Under the pieces are notes generated by a model. It saw only the letters and a program-made list of their open reading frames with translations, did no database searches and was not told the origin of the DNA. A DNA stretch of 64,000 nucleotides from Adineta vaga (lineage: Eukaryota > Animalia > Rotifera): NCBI GenBank assembly GCA_021613535.1, contig CP075494.1:8556001-8620000 (forward strand). Direction: 5' to 3'. Made by a program: the position numbers and the translations under genes. Shown piece after piece: positions 6,942 through 40,245 of this stretch. Numbering within the stretch: the stretch's first letter is position 1; each line of letters begins with the position of its first letter.

Positions 6942-12356
<5,415 letters not shown>

Positions 12357-26264: not shown

Positions 26265-27028
26265 TTACATCATACCGATTTGATTAAATACAGACTCATC
26301 ATCACCATAGAGATCAATGAATACACCTAGGACTTGAGGATGTTCATTTGCTAATGCCCATTCAACGAGTGACATATCGCCTGTTTTACGCTGTTCTTCA
26401 TATCGACGCCAATCGACACCAGATTTGAGTAATGTTACAACAACAGACCCTTGATTACATTCAATCGCTCGTTCTAATGGAGTTTTATTTTCAAAGCCAG
26501 CATAATCAACAGGAAAACCACGAGTTAGTAAATAATCGATAATATCTAAACGTCCATAGCCTATAGCAACATTCAATGCTGATTCTCGAGCAACTGAAAT
26601 GCAATACTAAAGAAAACACATACACATATCAATGTGTCGTTGAAACGTTCAAATCAATAGAAAGACTTACAATTGTGACCAAGATGAAAAAGAAGATCAA
26701 CCATTGCTAATCTTCCATTAGCAATAGCTGTGTAAAGTGGTGTATGTCCATTTGAATCAAGTAAACATGCATCAGCTACAGATGGCTGTTGCCGAAGACG
26801 GCTATGTAACCGAATTATACCTGCCACGTCATTTGTTCGAACGGCATGATGTAAATCAAATTTTGGTATTTGTAAATCTGTGTGTTGCTGCTGCTGCTGT
26901 TGTTGTTGTTGTTGCTGAGATGAAGAAGATTTTCCTTGATTGGATGGTTGTTGATAAGGAGCATAATGACTACGATGATGAATTCCAGAACTTGCATTAT
27001 GATGATGAAAATTGTTTTCAGTCAACAT
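26265..27028 (-). CDS. PolyQ-containing ankyrin-repeat protein, 2 coding exons
   Basis: N-terminal His/Ser/Gln low complexity, then LHHAVRTND, GHTPLYTAIANG, ESALNVAIGYG, KTPLERAIECN. One intron at about 26607-26670. Confidence 0.85.
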
Positions 27029-29491
27029 GTTCGTTTTGATCAAAATGAAAACAGTTAAACAAAAAATATCTAGAAAAAAAAAGAAAACCTTATCTTTCAT
27101 ATATCAATCAATCAATCGAATAGATAAGCATAACGATGACCTTCTCTGTTTATTCTATATTTCTAGTTTAATATGTTCTTAGTATCTCGTACATTCTTTC
27201 TCTTGATATTATTCGAACGTTGAAATCAAACGTCTTTAACTATTTTTTGTATTGTATTTAGATTAACCCTCGTGGAAAAAAACAGGAATTGAATCATACT
27301 TACGAATTTCTTTCTCTCGTCTAATACGCGTTCATATGTATGATGAACGAGATGCATATAGCTTACATCCCGTTCCTATTTCCTACATATTCATATAAAA
27401 TCATCTATCGCTTTTGTTCGATGATTTTCATTGTTAACAATGCATAACGTTGCAAGACCTTGTTCTCATAAGATGCGTACACATTATACTATTGAAAGAA
27501 AAAGAAAACGGGGAAAAAAGGATATGACGAAAAGAAAAGAAAAAGCCTCTGAAGTCCATAAATCTTCTCACCAAATGCATTTATACTCGCATAGTTTACA
27601 ATTAATAGTGAACGAATCGGTTTGAACATCATTGAATTATTCAATAACTTACTATAACAACTCACACAACATTATATTGTGTATGTTTTTCTTTACTTTC
27701 GAGTAGTGCATTGACGAGTCTTTCGTTTTTTCTCTCTTTCTCTCTCCCATTCACTCACTCTATGCGCTATATATAAGCTACAATCAGCAAGTTATTTATT
27801 TGAAGATGAAAGCATCATCGTCATCCGTATTACGACGACTACCTTTGCTCTTTCGTCAATCGAAAGAGAGAAGAAGAAAAAGGCAGAAACGTAAAAAAAA
27901 AGAAAAGTAAATGAAATCAATTCACTTACTCAATCGTACAAAAAAAATGATTCAGATAAAAAGAAACAGCAATATTTTTGTTATTTATTGCTACTACGAC
28001 TGCGTTTGTGCTTATGTCGATGGACGAATCAAGGAATAATATCATGACGACAATGCATGCTCTTTTCTTTTTTCTTCTTCTTCTTCTTTTTCTTCTTCAT
28101 CTACAGCTAAAAAACCACACGCGACAGCTGCTCGTCGAGAATATATCATGAGAAATGCAATGAGAGAAAGAAAAAGAAAGAAAAGAGACAGACTATAGCC
28201 TTGTCTCATCTGGAAACGACGGGGATGATTTATTAGCAGTACGTAGGCGAAAATAGAGGAAAAGTATAGAAATAGTTTTTCCACTCACTCTATTTGTTTC
28301 GCATGCATCAACAGTTATATTCTAATGGAATAAAAGAAAAAGAAAAAAATAGAACAGAAAACTTGTCGAGCTCCATGCGTCTAAAGAAGTTTCGAGAATC
28401 AACAGAAAACGGAAGTTTTCTTTATTTATATGTTACTACTAACAATAATAATAATAATAAGAAGAAAAAACATTATGTTCCGATTCAAAAATTAAAATAT
28501 TACCTGGTTATATCGTAGATTCATTGACGTAAGAAATTTTGTTTAGTCAATGGGTGGAGGGCCAAAAAAAGAAGAACGACGACCGCCTGATAACAAAAAG
28601 CCCTTTTATGAATATCACGCGATAACTTGCTTTGTAAACTATACTCATCCTTTCAATGAAGAATCTTATTTTTTTCATTCTTTTGAGTTTTTTTCTCAAA
28701 TATATGTGTAGATGATGACCTCGTATGAAAACGTTCGATAAGTATCAGTATTTATCGTAAATACGTCATATACAAAGTGTACAGATAAAATAAAAACGGA
28801 ACGATAGCGAAGGTTCTTTTCTTTTTCTTGTACTCTTCGTGTGAGTCGAGTCACTATTCGATAAATAAAGCGACGAGATAAGGAAATTTTTGCATCGAGT
28901 GAAATTTTTTATTTACGATCGATAAATGTATCGTCTTTCGATCAAGGCTGTACAATTTGAGATTGTCTCATTTCAGTTTTTTTCTAATGAAACATCAACA
29001 GAGGATTTTAATCACGTTTTCGAATGGGACAAATCATTGAAATGATAAAAACAAATTATGATATTTTTAATGGTTGTTAAACGCAATATTATCTAACAGG
29101 AGCAGTGTACTCTCCCTTGATGATTTGTTATTTACTTATTTAAATAAAAATCTTACCTTTTTTTTCTCTTCATAAAACTATACTTATCTTTGCACCGAAA
29201 TTTAGGCTTACTTTTTCGTTGATTAATCTATTTTTGGTTAAATTCGAACAACAATAACCAAAGAATTTTAATAGAAAAGAAATCTATGAATCATTGTTTA
29301 CATTTCGTTAGAAAAGTTGTTGTGATCAGCTGATGCGATGAATGTTTTTCTGAAAAATGATAAATAATTGTGCAATTCTGAAAGTAAAAAAGGGAAAAAT
29401 AAACTCACTTCATTTCTTATTTTCTCTATCATTTTTAATGAACACATTGTTTAGAAAAATATTTTTATAGAAATACAAAAAATAATAGAAA

Positions 29492-30022
29492 TTATTTTGA
29501 TGAATAATTTAGCATTTCTTTTCGTAATTTATCCAAAGTTGATTTATGTGATAAAAACATATTTTTCTTTATATAATTTTGAAAAATCATCCAAGATTTT
29601 CCATGAAATTGATCAGTAATTATCGTTGTTGTTGATTTTAATGTATTCGTATGCATACAATATTGATGATATGCATGCATTATATACAATGACGTATGAA
29701 TATGACTTGTTAAACAAGAATTTTTTCGATCTATATTCATTTGAACATAATAAGTTGATGGAAGATTAATGTTCATCCATGAAATCAATGGTATTCGATC
29801 GGTGATTTCATAATACGAACACGTGTCATTAATTTTCTTCAATTCATTAATATGAATAATAAATGGATGAAATTTCCATAGATTATTTACGAGAACATCA
29901 AAAGTTGTTGTTAAAGGAGCATCAATAGATACAATTTGTTTCCCATGAAATGGAATTGGATAAACTACAATGGCAATCAAGACTGGAATGCAAAGAAGAA
30001 AGAACGGACGATGACTTAACAT
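29492..30022 (-). CDS. SRPBCC/START-like (polyketide cyclase-like) fold protein with N-terminal hydrophobic signal/anchor; uninterrupted CDS
   Basis: ATG 30022 gives MLSHRPFFLLCIPVLIAIVVYP. The pattern KFHPFII..YEITDRIP..YYVQM..TIITDQF followed by a C-terminal helix SHKSTLDKLR resembles bacterial SRPBCC and fungal DUF7053-type proteins (recognised from memory). Confidence 0.6.
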   Translation of the reverse strand: MLSHRPFFLLCIPVLIAIVVYPIPFHGKQIVSIDAPLTTTFDVLVNNLWKFHPFIIHINELKKINDTCSYYEITDRIPLISWMNINLPSTYYVQMNIDRKNSCLTSHIHTSLYIMHAYHQYCMHTNTLKSTTTIITDQFHGKSWMIFQNYIKKNMFLSHKSTLDKLRKEMLNYSSK

Positions 30023-30300
30023 CTTTTCTTTCTGTTTATGATAAAATATGGGTAAGAGAGGGAAGGGTTGGGTTTGGTTATATTTTATCAATGAAGGAAC
30101 GAATAAATCGATCGAAGACAATACTAAACCAATGTTATGTGTTGATTCAATAGTGGGCGCTACTATCTGATATCACTGAAGTACAGAAAATATTTTTATT
30201 ATAATCTTTACATACAAGATACATTCGGGTGAGCAAATACAATGAAATCCCAACTTTGTTTTTCTCAATCTTAGTTATTACTATGATGACTATTATTGTT

Positions 30301-31341
30301 TCAATAAGCAATATGAAGAACACCACTACGAACATAGTAATATAAATGTTGACCACCAGAACCATAAACCCACGTTTTCAGATCAAAAAGATTTGTACCA
30401 TCTTTTGTACCTTTGACTTTATAAACTCGTACGGCTCTTTGATTTCCATACCAGTCAAGACGAGAACCACTAAGACATGTTTCTGGTGGATGATCGATTC
30501 CATTTTGGGTTAAAAAGTACGCAGTACCTTTTCCATAGATTTTTCCAATACCGCTTGGTTCAATACAAACAGCAGCTGATTCATCAAGTCCAATGCCACG
30601 AGCTAATATTCCTGTATCCTTATTCATACGAGCAAGAAATGTTACCAGACGACCATGTCGATCACGATTATCAAAATGAGAATCGGTGACGACATCGGAA
30701 AGGAAAGGTTGTCGTAAAAAATCATTATAGCCAAGAGTTAGAAGATTAATATACGGATTATTAAGCGCTTCAACTGAAGTAATTGTTCCTTCAAGAGCAG
30801 AAAAATAAGTACCACCAAGGATGGCACAGCCTGCTGAAGTACCACCAATTGGTATTTGTTTTATACTGCGCAAATAGTCAAGTGCATAATGGACTTTTGT
30901 ATTTTTCCAAAAGTTAACATAATTTGCTTGATCACCACCAGAAATAAAGACAGCTTCCGCATTCAGAATTGTTCGTTCGACTTCTGGATCATTGGCCAAT
31001 GTACGAGAATTGATCAATAATGTTTCAACAGAATTTATCGTTCCTAAATCATAGATATAACTATTATAAGCATCAGTACCAGTTGCTCGTAATATAACAA
31101 AATCACCGCCGCCAGCTTTTTTGATCATCCATTGAAATATTTCATCAACATCGGCACCTCCTCCAACCAGAACAGTACCACCAGCAGTAGTTGTATTCAC
31201 ATCATTCGCATCACCAATCAGTCCTATGGATGCAACACTTCTGCCATTCACATTTGTTTTCTCTTGAATCGACGCTCCACTGATAAAATTTACCAACGAA
31301 ATAAAACAACTCAATACAACAAGTAGATTCACATACATCAT
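30301..31341 (-). CDS. Cyanophycinase-like serine peptidase (peptidase S51 family), with signal peptide, intronless
   Basis: LVGGG, GGDFVILRA, AEAVFISGGDQANY, nucleophile elbow GGTSAG, DSHFDNRDRHGRL, GIGLDESAA. The likely start is ATG 31341 (MMYVNLLVVLSCFISLVNFISG); the ORF extends to 31404. Confidence 0.9.
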   Translation of the reverse strand: MMYVNLLVVLSCFISLVNFISGASIQEKTNVNGRSVASIGLIGDANDVNTTTAGGTVLVGGGADVDEIFQWMIKKAGGGDFVILRATGTDAYNSYIYDLGTINSVETLLINSRTLANDPEVERTILNAEAVFISGGDQANYVNFWKNTKVHYALDYLRSIKQIPIGGTSAGCAILGGTYFSALEGTITSVEALNNPYINLLTLGYNDFLRQPFLSDVVTDSHFDNRDRHGRLVTFLARMNKDTGILARGIGLDESAAVCIEPSGIGKIYGKGTAYFLTQNGIDHPPETCLSGSRLDWYGNQRAVRVYKVKGTKDGTNLFDLKTWVYGSGGQHLYYYVRSGVLHIAY

Positions 31342-32104
31342 ACCTTTACCGATAGTCGTGTGAAAATGTTTAATAACAAAAATATTATAGATTAAAACTG
31401 CCATAGTATCACATTTTCTTTCTCTCTCTATTGATTTTAGATTTAAAAAAAGATCAAATATATTCTATTATTTTCAATCTTGATGAAAATTCATTTTCTC
31501 ATCGAAAACAACAAGGGATTGTTAATTTTATTAGAAAGAAGAAAATCGACTAATTCAATTAATAGTTAGTATCTATCTATAAAAGCCATCCATACTCATT
31601 CTTTTTGGTTTTTCTATAAACAAATTATCGTTAATCGAATTTTGATATCTGCTGCGATATTGAATATAAACTTCCGATGACAAAAGATCTTCAACACTGC
31701 TCTATCAGTATTTGTTTTGTGACAAGATCAGTTCATTAATATATTTCGACGTGTGTTTTTTTTTCAAATAGTGTAATATATATATATTATAAAAAGGGAA
31801 GAAAAAAGATAGGGACAAAAGTAAGTAGAAGAGTACAGGATGTTAAACACAACAATGAATGAGATGACGACATCGTAACGATCAAGAAGAAAAGAAATAG
31901 AGTGAACGTAAAATAACAGCACTCACATACATGAACATATGACAACGACAAGACACAATTTTTTGAGAAAATAAGACGAAGTAAACATTGTTGTCTGTCC
32001 GACGTCATTCATATACCTACCGAATTGGTTTGTTTTGTTTTTTGTAGTTTTTATTTATATACACCGATTTTTATTTTCAATATATAAAAAAAATAATAAA
32101 GCGA

Positions 32105-33544
32105 TTATCTAGATGAGTTTGTATTATACGATGTTATAGGTGCAGATTGTTGTTGAAAAAATTTTGATGCAAGTAAATCTTGTTGTTGTTGTTGTTTTAA
32201 TACTAAACCTAAAGATGATAGAAAAAAATTTCAATCTGAATAAATAACAGAAAATTTTACCATCTAATTTATCATAATCAATTCGCATTGTTTTATGTGT
32301 TTTACGCCAAAGTTGAACATCAAATACACAATAAACACCCGATTCATATGTATCATATTTTAAATCAGGCATGATATTTTTTATTCTTGTTAACCATAAA
32401 CGTTCTTCTTTATGATAACGCCAATCACGTTTATATAATTCGGCGGCAGCGGATAATTGCACATAATCATTACCAAATGAATAGAATAGAAAGAATAATG
32501 TATCTTCATTTAAATTTGAAAAATTTACAGGAGATAATTTTTCACGTATCTGTAAGCCCATTTGATATTCAGATGGTACTTGATAATCGATTTCATGTGC
32601 TCGAGCTTGATTATCAGAAAATGGAGATACAAAGGATGGATATAAATCATTTGGACTTTCCATACCTAGAAAAACGAGAAGATTTCAATAGATTCATAGT
32701 ATTCATGTTGATAAAGAATACATACTTAGTCCTAATGTTGTTAAATCAAAATTCAATAACATTGATGAATCTGGATGTTTTTCTGCATGTTGAATCATTT
32801 GTAAAAGTCCAACGAGACCATATTGATCTGTAATTGTCGTTGGTGGTAAACCATTGGTATTCGTGATTGTTGACGGCGTATTTGATAGGTGCGTTATTGT
32901 TGTTGATGATGATGCGGATGATGGTGTTGATTTTGTATTGGAAGATGATTGATGTCGATTTATTAATGTACTCAATGGATCAATGGATGTTTTAAATGGA
33001 ATAGGTGACTGCGGTTGTGAATGTTGTGATGAATTATATCCATTACTTATTGATTGATGATTTTGATATAGAGATTGAATATTATTCGTCGATGATGATA
33101 ATGATTCATGGAAATTATTTCGATGAGGTAATGGTGGAAAATCTTCTTGTTGTAATTCAAACTATAGCGAAAAGAAATCTATTGTCTTTGACAAAAAGAA
33201 AATAAATGTTTTACATTTTTCTCTATTTGAGTTTGAGGAGATGATCCAAGTAAACCATCAAATTGTGATGAAGTGGATTGTTGAAAATTTAGAAGATTAG
33301 GTTGTTTCATTAATAATTGTTGTGCTAATGTTGACGAAGATGATGATGATGACGTTGATGATGTTGGCTGTCCTATTGTTGTCCACTGTTTTCCACTGCC
33401 AATCGATCCAAGTAAAGATGAAGTATTCGAATTTAGAGATGATGGTATTGTTGATACTCCACCATTACTATTGACATGTAAATAAGAAGATGGTGTAGAT
33501 GATGATGATGAATTGGCAGTGGCTGCCAAATGTAGAAAAGACAT
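32105..33544 (-). CDS. CNOT2: CCR4-NOT complex subunit 2 (NOT2/Regena), 4 exons
   Basis: EDFPPLP, DQYGLVGLL, DLTTLGL, LYPSFVSPF, IDYQVPSEY, NOT box EDTLFFLFY..QLSAAAELYKRDWRYHKEERLW. Confidence 0.93.
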
Positions 33545-34065
33545 AATGTTTTGAAAAAAAATAACAAATCGAAGAATTTCTTTTTTGTTTTTCTCTAAGG
33601 AAAAAGAAAAGAAAGATTAAAATATGAACATGTAAACAGATAAAATCGAGAAAAACAAGTCACAATGTTCAATAAATGTTAGTATTTTGTTTTGACGAAT
33701 AATCTGTAAAAAAAAATATACGCATCAACCATAGAAAAAAGGTCCGGATGAAGATGAATTGACATTCGAAGAAATGAGTCGCGACAATCGCTTTCATTCG
33801 ATTCAAATGTTAATGAAAAGAAATAATTAAATTTTTATTTTAGATTTTATTATCAATGTTTAAAAATAACATCGAAAAGGTTTCTTATATAAATAAATAA
33901 TAATGCATAAAACAACTAGCGACATCCTCTATTCTCATTTGTTACAAGAATAAAACCATTCATCTACTTCGAAAACGTCTTTACGACTATTTTAAAGTAA
34001 AAAAGTAGATTTTATCAATCAATTCATAATAAAACGAACTATTTATTAATCTATATATAGATTCA

Positions 34066-35320
34066 ATGTCTCTCAAATATCTCACTCGATTTTCATACTT
34101 TCTTCTTCTTTTCAATCTGACTATACATGCGCAACAAGAACAATCAGTCATCGCTTTTGAACCATCTTCAATCAGTATTACAGTCGGTCAAAATTATTCA
34201 GTCAATGTTCGTCTTCTAATACCCGATATCATTCCACCCAATGTTTTCTTGATGTTTATGTACAATGATAAACTCTCGGATGCAGACGGTTATATTCAAA
34301 CTTTACCAAATATAACATTTACTAAACAAACAAGTGATGATCAAAGTCGAATGATTATTGTTAGTGGTCGTCGACAAGGACATGTTGTTGTGACAGCACA
34401 ATCGCCACAAGTAAACATATCATCATTCTACGATTTTCTTCTTATTGATATTGCACGAAGTAAAACATTAAATATTTTAATACAACTTGTTGGATGGATT
34501 TATTTCTTTGCTTGGTCAATATCGTTCTATCCTCAAATTATACTTAATTTTCGTCGTCAAAGTGTCATTGGATTAAATTTTGATTTTTTAGCATTGAATA
34601 TTCTTGGACATACATGTTACTCTATATATAATCTATGTTTGTATACGTCACATGATGTTCAAAAACAATACTATACTGCACATCCACATGGAATTTTACC
34701 TGTTTTGCTTAATGATGTAAGAGAATGATTCATTTGGAATAGATTCTTTATATAAATTATTCATATAGGTTTTGTTCAGTGTTCATGCTGTCATTGCATG
34801 TTTAGTAACTGTTGGTCAGTGTGTATTTTTTGAACGTGGTACACAACGTGTTTCCTACATAGCTCGTATAATTGGCGGCGTCTTAATCATTTTTTTACTT
34901 ATATCTTCGATCGTTGCATTTACAAGTCATTTATCAACATTAACATTACTTTATTTTTATTCCTATGTGAAATTAACAATAACAATGATTAAATATGTTC
35001 CACAAGCATGGATGAATTATAAACGAAAATCTACCGAAGGTTGGTCAATTGGTAATATTCTGTTAGATTTTACTGGTGGAGTATTAAGTGTCGTACAAAT
35101 GTTTTTACTTGCAATTAATTATGATGATTGGTCATCAATATTTGGTTCACCAACAAAATTTGGATTAGGATTATTTTCAATTATATTTGACATATTGTTC
35201 ATTCTTCAACATTATATATTCTATCGAACAAATCGATCAATCGTTCGACGAACAAAACTTACGACAAATGAGGAAGATAATCATGATGAAACATCACCTA
35301 TTCTTCCTGCACGATTATAA
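34066..35320 (+). CDS. CTNS: Cystinosin (lysosomal PQ-loop cystine transporter), one intron 34717-34768
   Basis: Signal peptide and luminal domain, GWIYFFAWSISFYPQ, SVIGLNFDF, VLLNDVLFSVHA, KYVPQAWMNYKRKSTEGWSIGNILLDFTGG, PTKFGLG. Confidence 0.95.
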
Positions 35321-35849: not shown

Positions 35850-37556
35850 TTATGATAAGACACAAATGCGTGGTTGATGTCGAGATCGAGATTTTGTTGG
35901 AGGAAGTGTTTCACCACTTAACGTTCGACTACATCCACAATTTAGAGTAGATCGACCATTATGTTGTTGAACAACTTGTTGATTCTCGTAAGGTGAATGA
36001 AAAAATGAAGTTGAATTTATTGGTATTTTGACTGGTTCTTCTTCAGTATTACGATTATTTTCTGAAAGAGTTGGTGGTCGATGCAATTCCGTTAAATAAT
36101 CATACATTGTACTTGTTTGAAAACGAGTCAACGCTAATTGAGGAAATGGTAAGAGATCAAATGTACGTGGTGGTCGTCGTCGAAACCATTCATGTTGTTT
36201 AATTTGTTCAACAGTAAAACGTTGATTTTTATTAATATGTAATAAACCATGAATAAGTGAAGTTAAATGTAGTTCAACATCATCTGGAATGGTATAAACA
36301 CCTTTACCAATTGTTTGAAATAATAAATAAATATTATCAGCTTCAAATGGTAAACATCCGGTGACAATATTATATAAAGTTACACCACATGACCAAATAT
36401 CAATCGAAAAACCACTATATGTATCTTCACCATTGGCTATTTCAGGACATTGAAAAGCAGGAGTACCTAAAAGATGATATTCATTGTAAGATAAAATTCT
36501 TGTTTTGACTCAGATTTATTAATAATTGACTAATTCTATAGATTAAATCTTATTTTAATGTATTTCTCTGATAGATTTAAATTAATTAATCTCGAGAGTT
36601 AAAAAAACACCACATACCTTGACTTCTTGTAATTGTATCATCAAAACTGAACCTAAATAGAAAAGAAAAACATTGATATTTTTAATCAAATTCATTCTTT
36701 CGCATCTATTTACATATCCAGTTGTTCTGCTGTTCCAAAATCTGTAATTTTCAATTGATGTTCTATTGTAATTAATAAATTTCCTGGTCTAAATAATATA
36801 CAAATGTATTCTATATCTCTGAACGTTTTTTGTTACATACTTAATATCATTATGAATAATGAATTTTGAATGTAAATATTCGATTCCATCGATCAATTGT
36901 ATAAAATATCCATGTGCTTGCCAGATAGGAAATGCTCTTGTGTCTCGTTGATGTTCATCACTATCGAGCATTTCTTGTAATGAAACAACGCAAAGATCAA
37001 TAAATAAATATAGCTTTTGTTTTTCATCATTTCTAATAAAATCATATAATTTAATTATATTTTGATGATTTAGTTTTTTTAATAAACGTATTTCTGTTGC
37101 TGCCATCTTTTCACCGTGTGGAGTTTTACGTAAACGTCTTCGTTGCATAATTTTAACTGCACGTCGACATAAATTACGACGATCTAAACATTCTTTTACT
37201 TTAGCATAAGAACCTTGCCCAATAACATCACCAAATAGATAAGCTCCGATAAATTTTGCACGTTTACGTTTAGCATAAAAATTGAAATCATCTTCGGATG
37301 AAACACGTTGAATAGGAACTACTGTAGGTGGAGTTAATTCAAATATACAACCGGATGTTTGTTCACCATCATCTTCTTGTTCATCAAATAAGATATTAAA
37401 TTGAGCACCAGCATGTTCAGATGATGAATGACCGTTTTTATAATTGTACAAGATCGATGGTTGCTGAATATGAGAATATAATTCGTCTTTTTCAGATGAA
37501 TATTGAGAAGTATTTCCAATGAATACTGAAGATGGTAAGAGACTTTTATCAGTCAT
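35850..37556 (-). CDS. STK11: Ser/Thr kinase LKB1 (STK11/PAR-4), 4 exons including a 35-nt exon 36652-36618
   Basis: KRKRAKFIGAYLFGDVIGQGSYAKVKECLD..LCRRAVKI, QAHGYFIQLIDGIEYLHS, DIKPGNLL, SQGTPAFQCPEIANG, TTMY/TSTMYDYL-type C-tail motif, CaaX end CVLS*. Confidence 0.93.
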
Positions 37557-38391
37557 GTCCACACATCATTTAGTTCTGAGAAAATAAAGTTGTTTTTGAA
37601 ATAAAAATATTTTCAATTAATGATGAATCTCGATCCCAATAATTCTTCGAATATTCTTAAGTCAAAATAGATGTAATTTAAGATTTTATTTGAACTATAA
37701 TGTTCTTTTTTGCGAGATAATCTATCATAAATAATGGTTGTGATAGACAACGAATAAAATAATCTGTATGATTTCTTAATTCTATCTGATCGATAGATGG
37801 CAATGGTTTAGTTTATAAACAAAATCTCTCTTAAAGAATATAATGTATTCTAGTAGCAATTAAAATTATCTTTAAAATTTGCAGATGATTCCAACTTTTG
37901 GGAAAGATTAAACATAAAAATAGCAACATTTTGATCTGTTTTCTTTTTTGTTATTAATGATTTTGTTTCTTATAAATATTTTATCAGATTTCTTCTTCAC
38001 TCTATACGAAAGAAGAAAAGAGCGTGTCTGATGATGATTGATTTGTTTTAGTCACCTGTATAAGCGAACAAACCGTTTGTTTGTTTCGTATCACTGATTT
38101 ATCTGAGTATTTTGATATGTATACATCACTGTCGCTAATCAATCGCCAGGTGTCCAAAGTTTAAGAGTATTTCGTATATTTTTTTTCTATTCGGTTTTTG
38201 TGTGTCCCTATTAGGTGAGTGGGAATATTTTACCAACAAACCACAAAAAACATAGTCGGCTGTACAGAATCCACTAATATATAATATTTTTGTAAGTTTA
38301 TATTTTTTTCTCCTTGGTTGGTCACAAAATATCGAGTTTCAGGTACTCTTTCGTCTCTCTCTCTACACAAATTTTCGACCTTCAACTTCTT

Positions 38392-38662: not shown

Positions 38663-40245
38663 ATGAGCGGACCATATAATCATCAAGTAGCAGCTGGACA
38701 AAGTTTTGGTCAAGGTATTGGCTATACTAGTGGAGTAAATGCCAGTCAATTTGGTGGTAACGCAGCTGGACAAGCTGTTGGACAAATTGCTGGACAAGCT
38801 GCTGGACTAGCTGCTGCTGCACAAGCTGCTGGACAAAACTTTACTCAAACCTCTTCAACATATCGAGCAGAATCTCATCAAACTCAACAAAATCCCGGTG
38901 TTCGTGCACAACAATTACAACGTAATGAACGAGAAACATCGTCTCAAGCTGCTTCAATACAACACACAGCAGAATCCCATCAAACTCAACAAAGTTCTAA
39001 TAGTCGTGGAGAAAAACTACAACGTAATGAACGAGAAACATCATCTCAACCTGCATCGACACAACGATCTGCTGAAGTTCGCTCCAGTCGACATGCTTCA
39101 AAAAATCAAGGAGGACATCATCATCATCGTCATCGTGAACGCACAAATTCCCAAAGCTCTAGCAGTTCCTCTGAAGGTGTTTATAAACTCGCCGGTGGTG
39201 ATGCTGGAGCAGCTGGTCTAACTGCTTCAAATTCCCATCAACAGTATTCTGCTGAAAGTGCTTACGCTTATGGAGGAGCTGCAAATGGTGTCGTTGGTGC
39301 ATATGGAGGAGCTGCATATGGTGCAACTGGTGCATATGGAGGAGCTGCATATGGCGCAACTGGTGCATATGGTGCAGGTGCTGCTCCTTGTGGAACCACT
39401 CAAGTTGAAGGTCCACGACGACCTGGACGTCATCAAAAACAAGTTATTCGACTACCTGACCAAGCTCAAGGAGCAACACGACAAGTACGACGCCGTCTTC
39501 CGACACCAGAACCGGATACATTGGAACGAGTGTAAGTTTTCAGAAATATGTTTAAATTGAATCTTATTTCAATTTGTTATAATCTAGTTATATTCAACGT
39601 GTAGGTGGTGAAGTTATCGAAGAAATTACAGAAATTCCAACAACACCACCACCTCGTGTTCAAGAACGAACTGTTACCGAACCAGCTGGACCACCTCGAG
39701 TTGTCAAACGAACCATTCGTGTACCACCACGAGGTGGTGACTGTCAACAATCCGGTGGCTTTTCCGGTAACGTAGGTCAATCCAATAATTTATTGAGTGC
39801 CGGAAGTTATGGAAGTGTACAACAAGCTTCTGGTAACTTTCAACAACAGGGTGCTGCCTCACCTAGTATTAATAGTGGTGCATCCTTTGGCACTGGATTC
39901 GGTAATGCGGTCGGTGGTGCATCACAAGGTGCTGGATTTGGTGGTGCAGTCGGCAATTTCAGTCCTGCTGGTGGCAGTTATTCATCTGTCAATCAGGCTT
40001 ATGGAACACAAAATGCAGGTTTTCCACAACAAGCTCCAAGCTTTGGTGGTGGTTTCCAACAACAAGCTGCTAGCTTCGGTGGTGGTTTTCAACAACAAGC
40101 TGCTAGCTTCGGTGGTGGTTTTCAACAACAAGCTGCTAGCTTCGGTAGCGGTTTTCAACAACGACCAACTGGTGCTTTCAGTTTCATAGCGCAAGGATTA
40201 ACACCAAGTGCTGGTCTTCATCAAGCTACCTGTTTTTATGTTTAA
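38663..40245 (+). CDS. Uncharacterised Gly/Ala/Gln-rich repeat protein with a Pro/Val/Arg/Glu core; exons 38663-39531 and 39588-40245
   Basis: A 56-nt GT-AG intron joins ORF 38663 (..DTLERV) to YIQRVGGEVIEE.., which continues in frame into the 39793-40245 ORF and ends ..ATCFYV*. Confidence 0.85.
38867..39058 (+). repeat. Tandem 102-bp (34-aa) coding duplication
   Basis: AESHQTQQ...LQRNERETSSQ occurs twice; the copies start at 38867 and 38969. Confidence 0.85.
39269..39375 (+). repeat. 33-bp coding tandem repeat (YGGAAYGATGA), about 3 copies
   Basis: tatggaggagctgca.atgg.g....tggtgca is repeated. Confidence 0.85.
40018..40161 (+). repeat. 33-bp coding tandem repeat (GFQQQAASFGG), about 4.3 copies
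   Basis: ggttt.caacaacaagctgctagcttcggtggt is repeated. Confidence 0.9.

Follow-up and report, generated by a model that had tools for sequence, protein, structure and literature searches.

How did an intact, intronless gene for a bacterial-type peptidase come to lie between animal genes in a bdelloid rotifer, and what might its product do there? We examined this question in a stretch of 64,000 nucleotides from Adineta vaga (hereafter the window; assembly GCA_021613535.1, contig CP075494.1, positions 8,556,001 to 8,620,000; positions below are counted from its first letter), in which a gene on the reverse strand at 30301-31341 encodes a peptidase of family S51 that resembles cyanophycinases. 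Cyanophycin is a bacterial nitrogen store, a polymer of Arg and Asp that resists ordinary proteases. Our best overall explanation, and a fairly probable one, is that the window holds a Bacteroidota-derived bdelloid gene for a secreted, cyanophycinase-like S51 enzyme that would act on cyanophycin.

An intronless S51 peptidase gene with its own transcript

The gene was compared residue by residue with the cyanophycinase CphB of Synechocystis sp. PCC 6803 (3EN0, 7UQW; TIGR02069). Its parts are as follows:

30301..31341, reverse strand: coding sequence of the S51 cyanophycinase-like peptidase, 346 residues, no intron, TGA stop at 30301-30303 (open reading frame (ORF) list, sequence, Pfam, transcript contigs)
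31342..31404, reverse strand: upstream in-frame extension to the ATG at 31402-31404, used in the 367-residue database protein and probably untranslated
31276..31341, reverse strand: residues 1-22, a hydrophobic stretch that is likely to be a eukaryotic signal peptide, possibly cut after I-S-G (hydropathy, low predicted local distance difference test (pLDDT) score)
30928..30930, reverse strand: Gln138 codon (GGDQ), equivalent to CphB Gln101 (sequence, CphB alignment)
30835..30837, reverse strand: codon of catalytic Ser169 (GTSAG), equivalent to CphB Ser132 (HMMER alignment to 3en0 and 7uqv; invariant in 80 sequences)
30649..30684, reverse strand: Asp220-Ser221-His222...Arg226, Arg228 and Arg231, equivalent to CphB D172, Q173, H174, R178, R180 and R183 (CphB alignment)
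30580..30582, reverse strand: Glu254 codon (GLDE), equivalent to CphB Glu201 (sequence, CphB alignment; invariant)
30195..30200, reverse strand: AATAAA polyadenylation signal, beginning 100 nt 3' of the stop (sequence)
30177..31349, reverse strand: span of the unspliced S51 transcript contigs (contigs from four runs)

The full ORF covers 30301..31404 (reverse strand, 367 residues), and the version that begins at the ATG at 31341 has 346 residues. Because the starts of orthologous proteins coincide with the ATG at 31341 in an alignment, and because the longest S51 transcript contig has its 5' end at 31349, we favour this ATG over the annotated one at 31404 as the translation start, the contigs in themselves being no proof of a start. 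The protein scores 30.6 bits on the Pfam model Peptidase_S51 (PF03575), above the cut-off of 23.9. Ser169, His222 (DSHF; codon 30676-30678, reverse strand) and Glu254 align with Ser132, His174 and Glu201 of CphB, and all three are invariant in 80 sequences.

At the N-terminus, the 11-residue Kyte-Doolittle mean is 2.0-2.9 across residues 1-20, small residues stand at -3/-1, and the structure model is disordered (pLDDT 50-56). Rotifer orthologues all begin with a divergent hydrophobic stretch and have no lipoprotein Cys; most bacterial homologues carry a lipoprotein-type Cys after the signal in the alignment. The presence of this Cys was judged from the aligned column; a crude lipobox pattern gave false positives in the rotifer N-termini. 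Based on these features, the product is predicted to be a secreted serine peptidase (Ser169/His222/Glu254). The original prediction had described an intact intronless S51 frame at 30301-31341, the GTSAG, DSHF and GLDE motifs, a hydrophobic N-terminus and an AATAAA about 100 nt after the stop, and each was found as placed. It had also set the gene between CNOT2 and an ankyrin gene; both of these spliced neighbours are there, together with a small gene (29492-30036) that it had missed.

To follow transcription, contigs from four public runs (three studies), whose records do not state RNA, were mapped onto 28600-33600. The introns of the neighbouring CNOT2-like gene were excised (32661-32720 in 4/4 runs and 33162-33214 in three; 32171-32258 shows up as a gap between pieces); since CNOT2-like introns are cut out in all four runs, the contigs are transcript assemblies. 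The S51 gene was covered by single colinear contigs at 30271-31349 (X1), 30177-31270 (X2), 30435-31328 (X5) and 30271-30779 (X6), one of which reaches 30177, 18 nt beyond the AATAAA, and depth fell to zero at 31439-31605 in 4/4 runs. The colinear contigs and this zero-depth interval show that the S51 gene is transcribed unspliced as its own unit. In run X2, a contig folds back onto the opposite strand at 31270/31325; the contigs of the other runs being colinear, the fold most likely arose when that run was assembled.

Bacterial relatives and origin of the gene

We compared the protein with database proteins and considered the best 120 matches. These were proteins of bdelloids, metagenomes and Bacteroidota, and bdelloids were the only named eukaryotes among them. 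The closest named matches came from Adineta steineri, A. ricciae, A. vaga and several Rotaria species, and the metagenome members that we examined all lay in eukaryotic, rotifer-like contexts (4/4). The closest non-rotifer relatives were Bacteroidota proteins from Hymenobacter, Solirubrum and Fulvivirga, which are named cyanophycinase (55-66% identity; Hymenobacter 60-66%). Species-representative bacterial genomes held 407 homologue loci, nearly all of them in Bacteroidota; they span Cytophagales, Flavobacteriales, Sphingobacteriales, Chitinophagales and Ignavibacteria/Kapaibacteria, with one in Balneolota and one in Myxococcota.

The Bacteroidota members are 'cyanophycinase' lipoproteins of ~345-355 residues (Hymenobacter, Aquimarina, Mucilaginibacter, Pedobacter and others). 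They belong to the same subfamily as the rotifer protein (47-66% identity over the mature protein), share its C-terminal extension and often lie in SusC/SusD loci of the cyanophycin-utilisation type. This lipoprotein family is very probably the source of the rotifer S51 gene. Unlike its bacterial relatives, the rotifer protein bears a putative eukaryotic-type signal instead of the lipoprotein Cys, and its gene has AT-rich codons, its own promoter and poly(A) signal, and no operon partners.

Phylogenetic trees were inferred with FastTree (207 rows) and with a quick IQ-TREE search under LG+C20 (76 rows), both unrooted. All rotifer rows formed one clade, with a local Shimodaira-Hasegawa (SH)-like support of 98 in FastTree and an SH-like approximate likelihood ratio test (SH-aLRT) value of 98 in IQ-TREE. 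This clade divides into clade A, with the window gene at the CNOT2 locus, and clade B, with a second A. vaga copy on C1. It attaches within a supported crown of Hymenobacter-like, Fulvivirga/Aquimarina and Chitinophagales sequences. Clade B and Hymenobacter share the derived motif D-T-H-F-N-N-P-D-R-R-G-R; basal or distant bacterial members and canonical CphB have D-Q-H...R.R..R. We read the direction as bacteria to rotifer because of the bacterial breadth of the family, its operon contexts, the lack of introns, the lack of other named eukaryotes among the best 120 matches and the polarity of this motif. The S51 gene was thus very probably acquired horizontally from Bacteroidota.

At the position of CphB Arg178, clade A has Arg, as the canonical enzymes do, and is in this respect unlike the Bacteroidota lipoproteins, the Arg having been restored; in clade B and the Hymenobacter group it is Pro, and an additional Arg follows three positions later. 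The clade A motif also turns up in a few members of clade B, perhaps through gene conversion or because these members are misplaced.

Bdelloids are better known than any other animals for their foreign genes, of which thousands have been documented (PMC3499245, PMC4632278, PMC5916493, PMC11258130), so this capture is expected rather than exceptional, and the S51 gene is a further instance of a familiar phenomenon. Like other bdelloid foreign enzyme genes, it is bacterial-type, expressed, placed among metazoan genes and common to Adineta and Rotaria. Unlike them, it lies mid-chromosome and not near a chromosome end (8.59 of 16.93 Mb on a chromosome-scale contig; the 6 contigs of the assembly total 100.8 Mb, and GC content is ~30% in the window).

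Age and conservation of the insertion

The order CNOT2-S51 was also found in Adineta steineri, in Rotaria sordida and in the metagenomic contigs L087 and L120, in which PQ-loop, kinase or ankyrin neighbours are present too; in a further metagenomic contig (L122), the small gene and the ankyrin gene accompany the S51 gene on its downstream side. Since this gene order recurs across both genera, the insertion next to CNOT2 is shown to be older than the Adineta/Rotaria split. GC content at third codon positions (GC3) is 19.6% in the S51 gene versus ~60% GC in Hymenobacter loci, and the ratio of nonsynonymous to synonymous divergence (dN/dS) is 0.18-0.32 at dS 0.4-0.8 in pairwise comparisons of orthologues. 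These values show that the gene is under purifying selection and that its codon usage is fully host-adapted. It is an old, domesticated gene that is functional in the animal, and no contaminant.

Only two S51 genes are present in the A. vaga genome, the window gene and the C1 copy (68% identity), and they have no neighbours in common. Paralogues of the window neighbours were not found within 10 kb on either side of the C1 copy, therefore an origin by whole-genome doubling could not be shown.

In Rotaria sordida, the orthologue is present as near-identical tandem copies (L085:6001-7041 and 8574-9614; dS 0.01), which are the result of recent duplication or conversion. One metagenome sample yielded long contigs (L120 and L121) on which genes of clades A and B lie in a rotifer-like setting; their GC content of 44-47% is far above the ~30% of Adineta and Rotaria loci, and the clade A gene of this sample branches below Adineta and Rotaria.

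Fold and pocket resemble those of cyanophycinase

We then asked which known enzymes the protein resembles. Sequence matches in the PDB were cyanophycinases only. An AlphaFold model (pLDDT 93) gave 3en0, 7uqw and 7uqv as its top nine Foldseek hits (E ~1e-16), with template-modelling (TM) scores of 0.78-0.83 on the target (0.80-0.83 for CphB, 3en0/7uqw). PepE enzymes, including Xenopus 7C9B, belong to the same peptidase family and have the same triad type, but they are structurally more distant (TM ~0.6; 14-17% identity) and lack the three-arginine pocket motif; the PepE model gave no match to the S51 protein at E 0.01.

In CphB, the critical residues beside Ser132 are Gln101, Asp172, Gln173, Arg178, Arg180 and Arg183 (Law et al. 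2009, as quoted in PMC3235067). Five of these six are identical in the S51 protein (Q138, D220, R226, R228 and R231), and Ser221 stands at the position of Gln173, where the active enzyme CphE has Thr (PMC3235067). Across 80 family and canonical sequences, Q138, S169, D220, H222, R228, R231 and E254 are invariant. The likeness to CphB thus extends over the S51 fold, the Ser-His-Glu triad and the pocket. The proteins differ in overall sequence (~20% identity), in the Ser for Gln173 and in a C-terminal beta-rich extension of ~70 residues, present as extra strands in the S51 protein and missing in CphB. CphB is moreover cytoplasmic, whereas the S51 protein has a putative N-terminal secretion signal.

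CphE (Pseudomonas anguilliseptica / P. alcaligenes), compared here by description, is secreted, as the S51 protein putatively is, and both are longer than CphB. Both have a small hydroxyl residue at the Gln173 position (Thr in CphE, clade B and Hymenobacter, Ser in the window protein) and keep the other pocket residues (PMC3235067). CphE differs in being proteobacterial and ~418 residues long.

Bacterial homologues in SusC/SusD loci

Cyanophycin-scavenging loci have been described in Bacteroidota and other bacteria (PMC10206079, PMC6243061). Of 80 bacterial loci, 11-14, scattered over the tree, had the homologue within a SusC/SusD locus. The order there is SusC, SusD and the homologue, followed mostly by a beta-aspartyl peptidase (Asparaginase_2 type, IaaA) and/or a canonical cyanophycinase, and some of these loci add a YfcC-type basic amino acid carrier or a dicarboxylate symporter. 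In one Cytophagales locus (L041), whose copy falls in the Hymenobacter-like group beside the rotifers, an S51 protein sorted by the type IX secretion system (T9SS), YfcC and an arginine dihydrolase-like gene are added.

Three Bacteroidota loci (L041:61-13276, L016:337-8933 and L070:3220-12318) look like complete SusC/SusD-based cyanophycin-utilisation loci. Besides up to three S51 types (T9SS-sorted, ~680 residues; lipoprotein, ~350 residues; canonical, ~280-300 residues), they encode a beta-aspartyl peptidase, a carrier of the YfcC or dicarboxylate kind and an arginine dihydrolase-like protein.

Weighing the alternatives

Several observations weigh against the explanation that we prefer, and we consider them here with the alternatives on which they bear. 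TIGR02069, the curated equivalog model for cyanophycinase and the sole NCBIfam match of the S51 protein, gives it 77.5 bits, under the cut-off of 126.6; bacterial subfamily members score 68-81 bits, and canonical copies in the same genomes 128-232 bits. Five bacterial genomes with a homologue have 1-4 canonical cyanophycinases each, and three of the five also have cyanophycin synthetase. By the curated model the S51 protein is therefore no canonical CphB/CphE; given the coexisting copies, we place it in a separate Bacteroidota subfamily, which may have a different or narrower substrate. The best PDB match, 7uqv, bears the title 'pseudo-CphB' although its motifs and residues are the same, so residue conservation alone is no proof of activity. 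No cyanophycin neighbours were found around the closest Hymenobacter and Solirubrum relatives, which are stand-alone genes. An acquired and functional S51 peptidase that acts on something else (aspartyl peptides of another kind, nothing but short beta-Asp-Arg oligomers, or a polyanionic peptide) would fit each of these points, as well as the C-terminal extension and the occurrence of the paralogous subfamily beside canonical cyanophycinases even in the same loci. We nevertheless consider it somewhat unlikely: the critical CphB pocket residues are kept, with the three arginines present in the window protein, the fold is much nearer CphB than PepE, and bacterial members are repeatedly linked with genes for beta-aspartyl peptidase, canonical cyanophycinase, basic amino acid transporter and arginine dihydrolase-like proteins. 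The PDB and fold matches, the pocket residues and the SusC/SusD loci with beta-aspartyl peptidase and canonical cyanophycinase are our grounds for a link with cyanophycin, whose degradation is the best-supported function of the protein and a fairly likely one. Of the cyanophycinase identity originally predicted, the link with cyanophycin is strengthened by the pocket, the fold and the setting of some bacterial relatives in SusC/SusD loci; membership of the canonical family, by the curated cut-off, fell away.

Origin can be weighed in the same manner. With canonical cyanophycinases as outgroup (branch ~2.6 changes/site), an approximately unbiased (AU) test did not reject the tree with all bacteria together (p 0.72), so rooted nesting of the rotifers within bacteria is not statistically shown, and the rotifer rows have a common AT-driven amino-acid bias that could draw them together in trees. 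Clades A and B might represent two acquisitions from different Bacteroidota donors rather than one acquisition and a duplication. The two copies share no synteny, the motif of clade B is of the Hymenobacter type and puts Pro at the Arg178 position where clade A has Arg, the deepest clade A member reads D-Q-H-F-T-Q-R like some Cytophagales, and the AU test retains a tree that groups clade B with the Hymenobacter-like sequences (log-likelihood 22 lower, p 0.27). That group, however, was chosen after the tree had been seen, both tree methods unite the rotifer rows, and clades A and B are both present in Adineta and Rotaria, and on balance two donors seem unlikely. Vertical descent from an ancient eukaryote, or transfer from rotifer to bacteria, draws on the same statistically unfixed root of the family tree. 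Either is very improbable given a family found in hundreds of Bacteroidota species of several classes and within bacterial operons, a wider cyanophycinase group that is bacterial, canonical-like motif states in bacterial members distant from rotifers, an S51 gene that is intronless, and bdelloids as the sole named eukaryotes among the best 120 matches. Bacterial contamination or misassembly, which only the bacterial affinity of the protein would suggest, has a negligible chance: five other assemblies or contigs, from other species, show this gene order, the codons are host-like (GC3), the eukaryotic neighbours are spliced, transcript contigs come from three studies, and the gene lies about midway along a contig of 16.9 Mb. 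Horizontal acquisition from Bacteroidota followed by domestication, as first proposed, is therefore upheld by the Bacteroidota relatives, the host linkage, expression in four runs, kept synteny and dN/dS, and the objection of misassembly raised with that proposal is not borne out; of the phylogenetic nesting looked for at the time, attachment within the bacterial crown was recovered in unrooted trees and lacks statistical support once the tree is rooted.

A possible route for dietary cyanophycin

A search of the A. vaga genome for cyanophycin synthetase found none; any cyanophycin substrate would therefore be dietary, and the idea of cyanophycin of the rotifer's own making was dropped. The isoaspartyl dipeptidase search that the original prediction had suggested returned candidates: Asparaginase_2 genes on C1 and C4, and an IadA-type gene at C2:977438-978762 (loci L094-L097, L099) with four exons and three short introns, every exon of which best matches TIGR01975 (beta-aspartyl-peptidase). 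When the largest exon alone of this gene was searched against 1.84 billion representatives, its nearest named relatives were eukaryotic (Selaginella and Capsaspora, both at 49%, and blastoclad fungi; 41-49% identity), and no match to the gene was found in five Bacteroidota genomes. As its nearest named relatives are eukaryotes, it was not counted as a bacterial capture, and the idea of a second capture was dropped. An IadA-type metallo beta-aspartyl dipeptidase is an unusual gene for an animal.

We propose that a Bacteroidota gene would have integrated between animal genes beside CNOT2 before the Adineta/Rotaria split and been fitted with a host secretion signal, promoter and poly(A) site. The enzyme, for which we infer secretion and a role in the digestive tract, probably cuts cyanophycin or (beta-Asp-Arg)n fragments of ingested bacteria or cyanobacteria into beta-Asp-Arg units, which IadA-type or Asparaginase_2-type enzymes encoded elsewhere in the genome could then split. 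The chances are about even that bdelloids are the first animals known with a secreted cyanophycinase of their own, taken in one or two captures from Bacteroidota with a SusC/SusD surface enzyme as its source and kept class-wide as two paralogous lineages, the dipeptides being finished by resident isoaspartyl peptidases.

Our literature search found no paper connecting cyanophycinase with rotifers, and no mention of the S51 gene turned up in the bdelloid horizontal gene transfer papers searched; public databases auto-name its orthologues 'Cyanophycinase'. No description of the activity of the ~350-residue Bacteroidota subfamily was found in the searched literature, and what this subfamily, separate from canonical CphB, does is a practical question for cyanophycin research. 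If cyanophycin is cut, the gene would be a clear nutritional example among the foreign genes catalogued in bdelloids: an animal would have taken one enzyme from a bacterial nutrient-scavenging locus and gained a nitrogen-rich polymer closed to ordinary proteases. The view of how, or how often, bdelloids acquire genes is left unchanged.

Neighbouring genes and other features of the window

The genes around the S51 gene are as follows:

31755..33334, reverse strand: CNOT2-like gene, 3' part, spliced, the upstream neighbour (introns 32171-32258, 32661-32720 and 33162-33214)
34066-35320, forward strand: PQ-loop gene, two exons (two ORFs), further upstream than CNOT2 (profile search)
36789-37562, reverse strand: protein kinase, further upstream (profile search)
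29492..30036, reverse strand: small expressed gene of no Pfam family, downstream, between the S51 and ankyrin genes (transcripts; conserved in bdelloid loci)
26265-27100, reverse strand: ankyrin repeats, downstream beyond the small gene (profile search)

The CNOT2-like gene includes a NOT2/3/5 C-terminal box (NOT2_3_5_C) at 32124-32663 on the reverse strand (115.7 bits). The product of the small gene has an N-terminal hydrophobic stretch and, judged by language-model features, is similar to arthropod 'signal anchor' and SRPBCC/polyketide-cyclase-like proteins. Four further bdelloid contigs have the small gene (61-71% identity) in the same place, directly 3' of S51. Further along the window, positions 38663-40245 (forward strand) form a GC-rich island (46% versus ~30%) whose long ORFs are rich in Gly, Ala, Gln and Ser with short repeated motifs, and which looks like a gene for a low-complexity protein.

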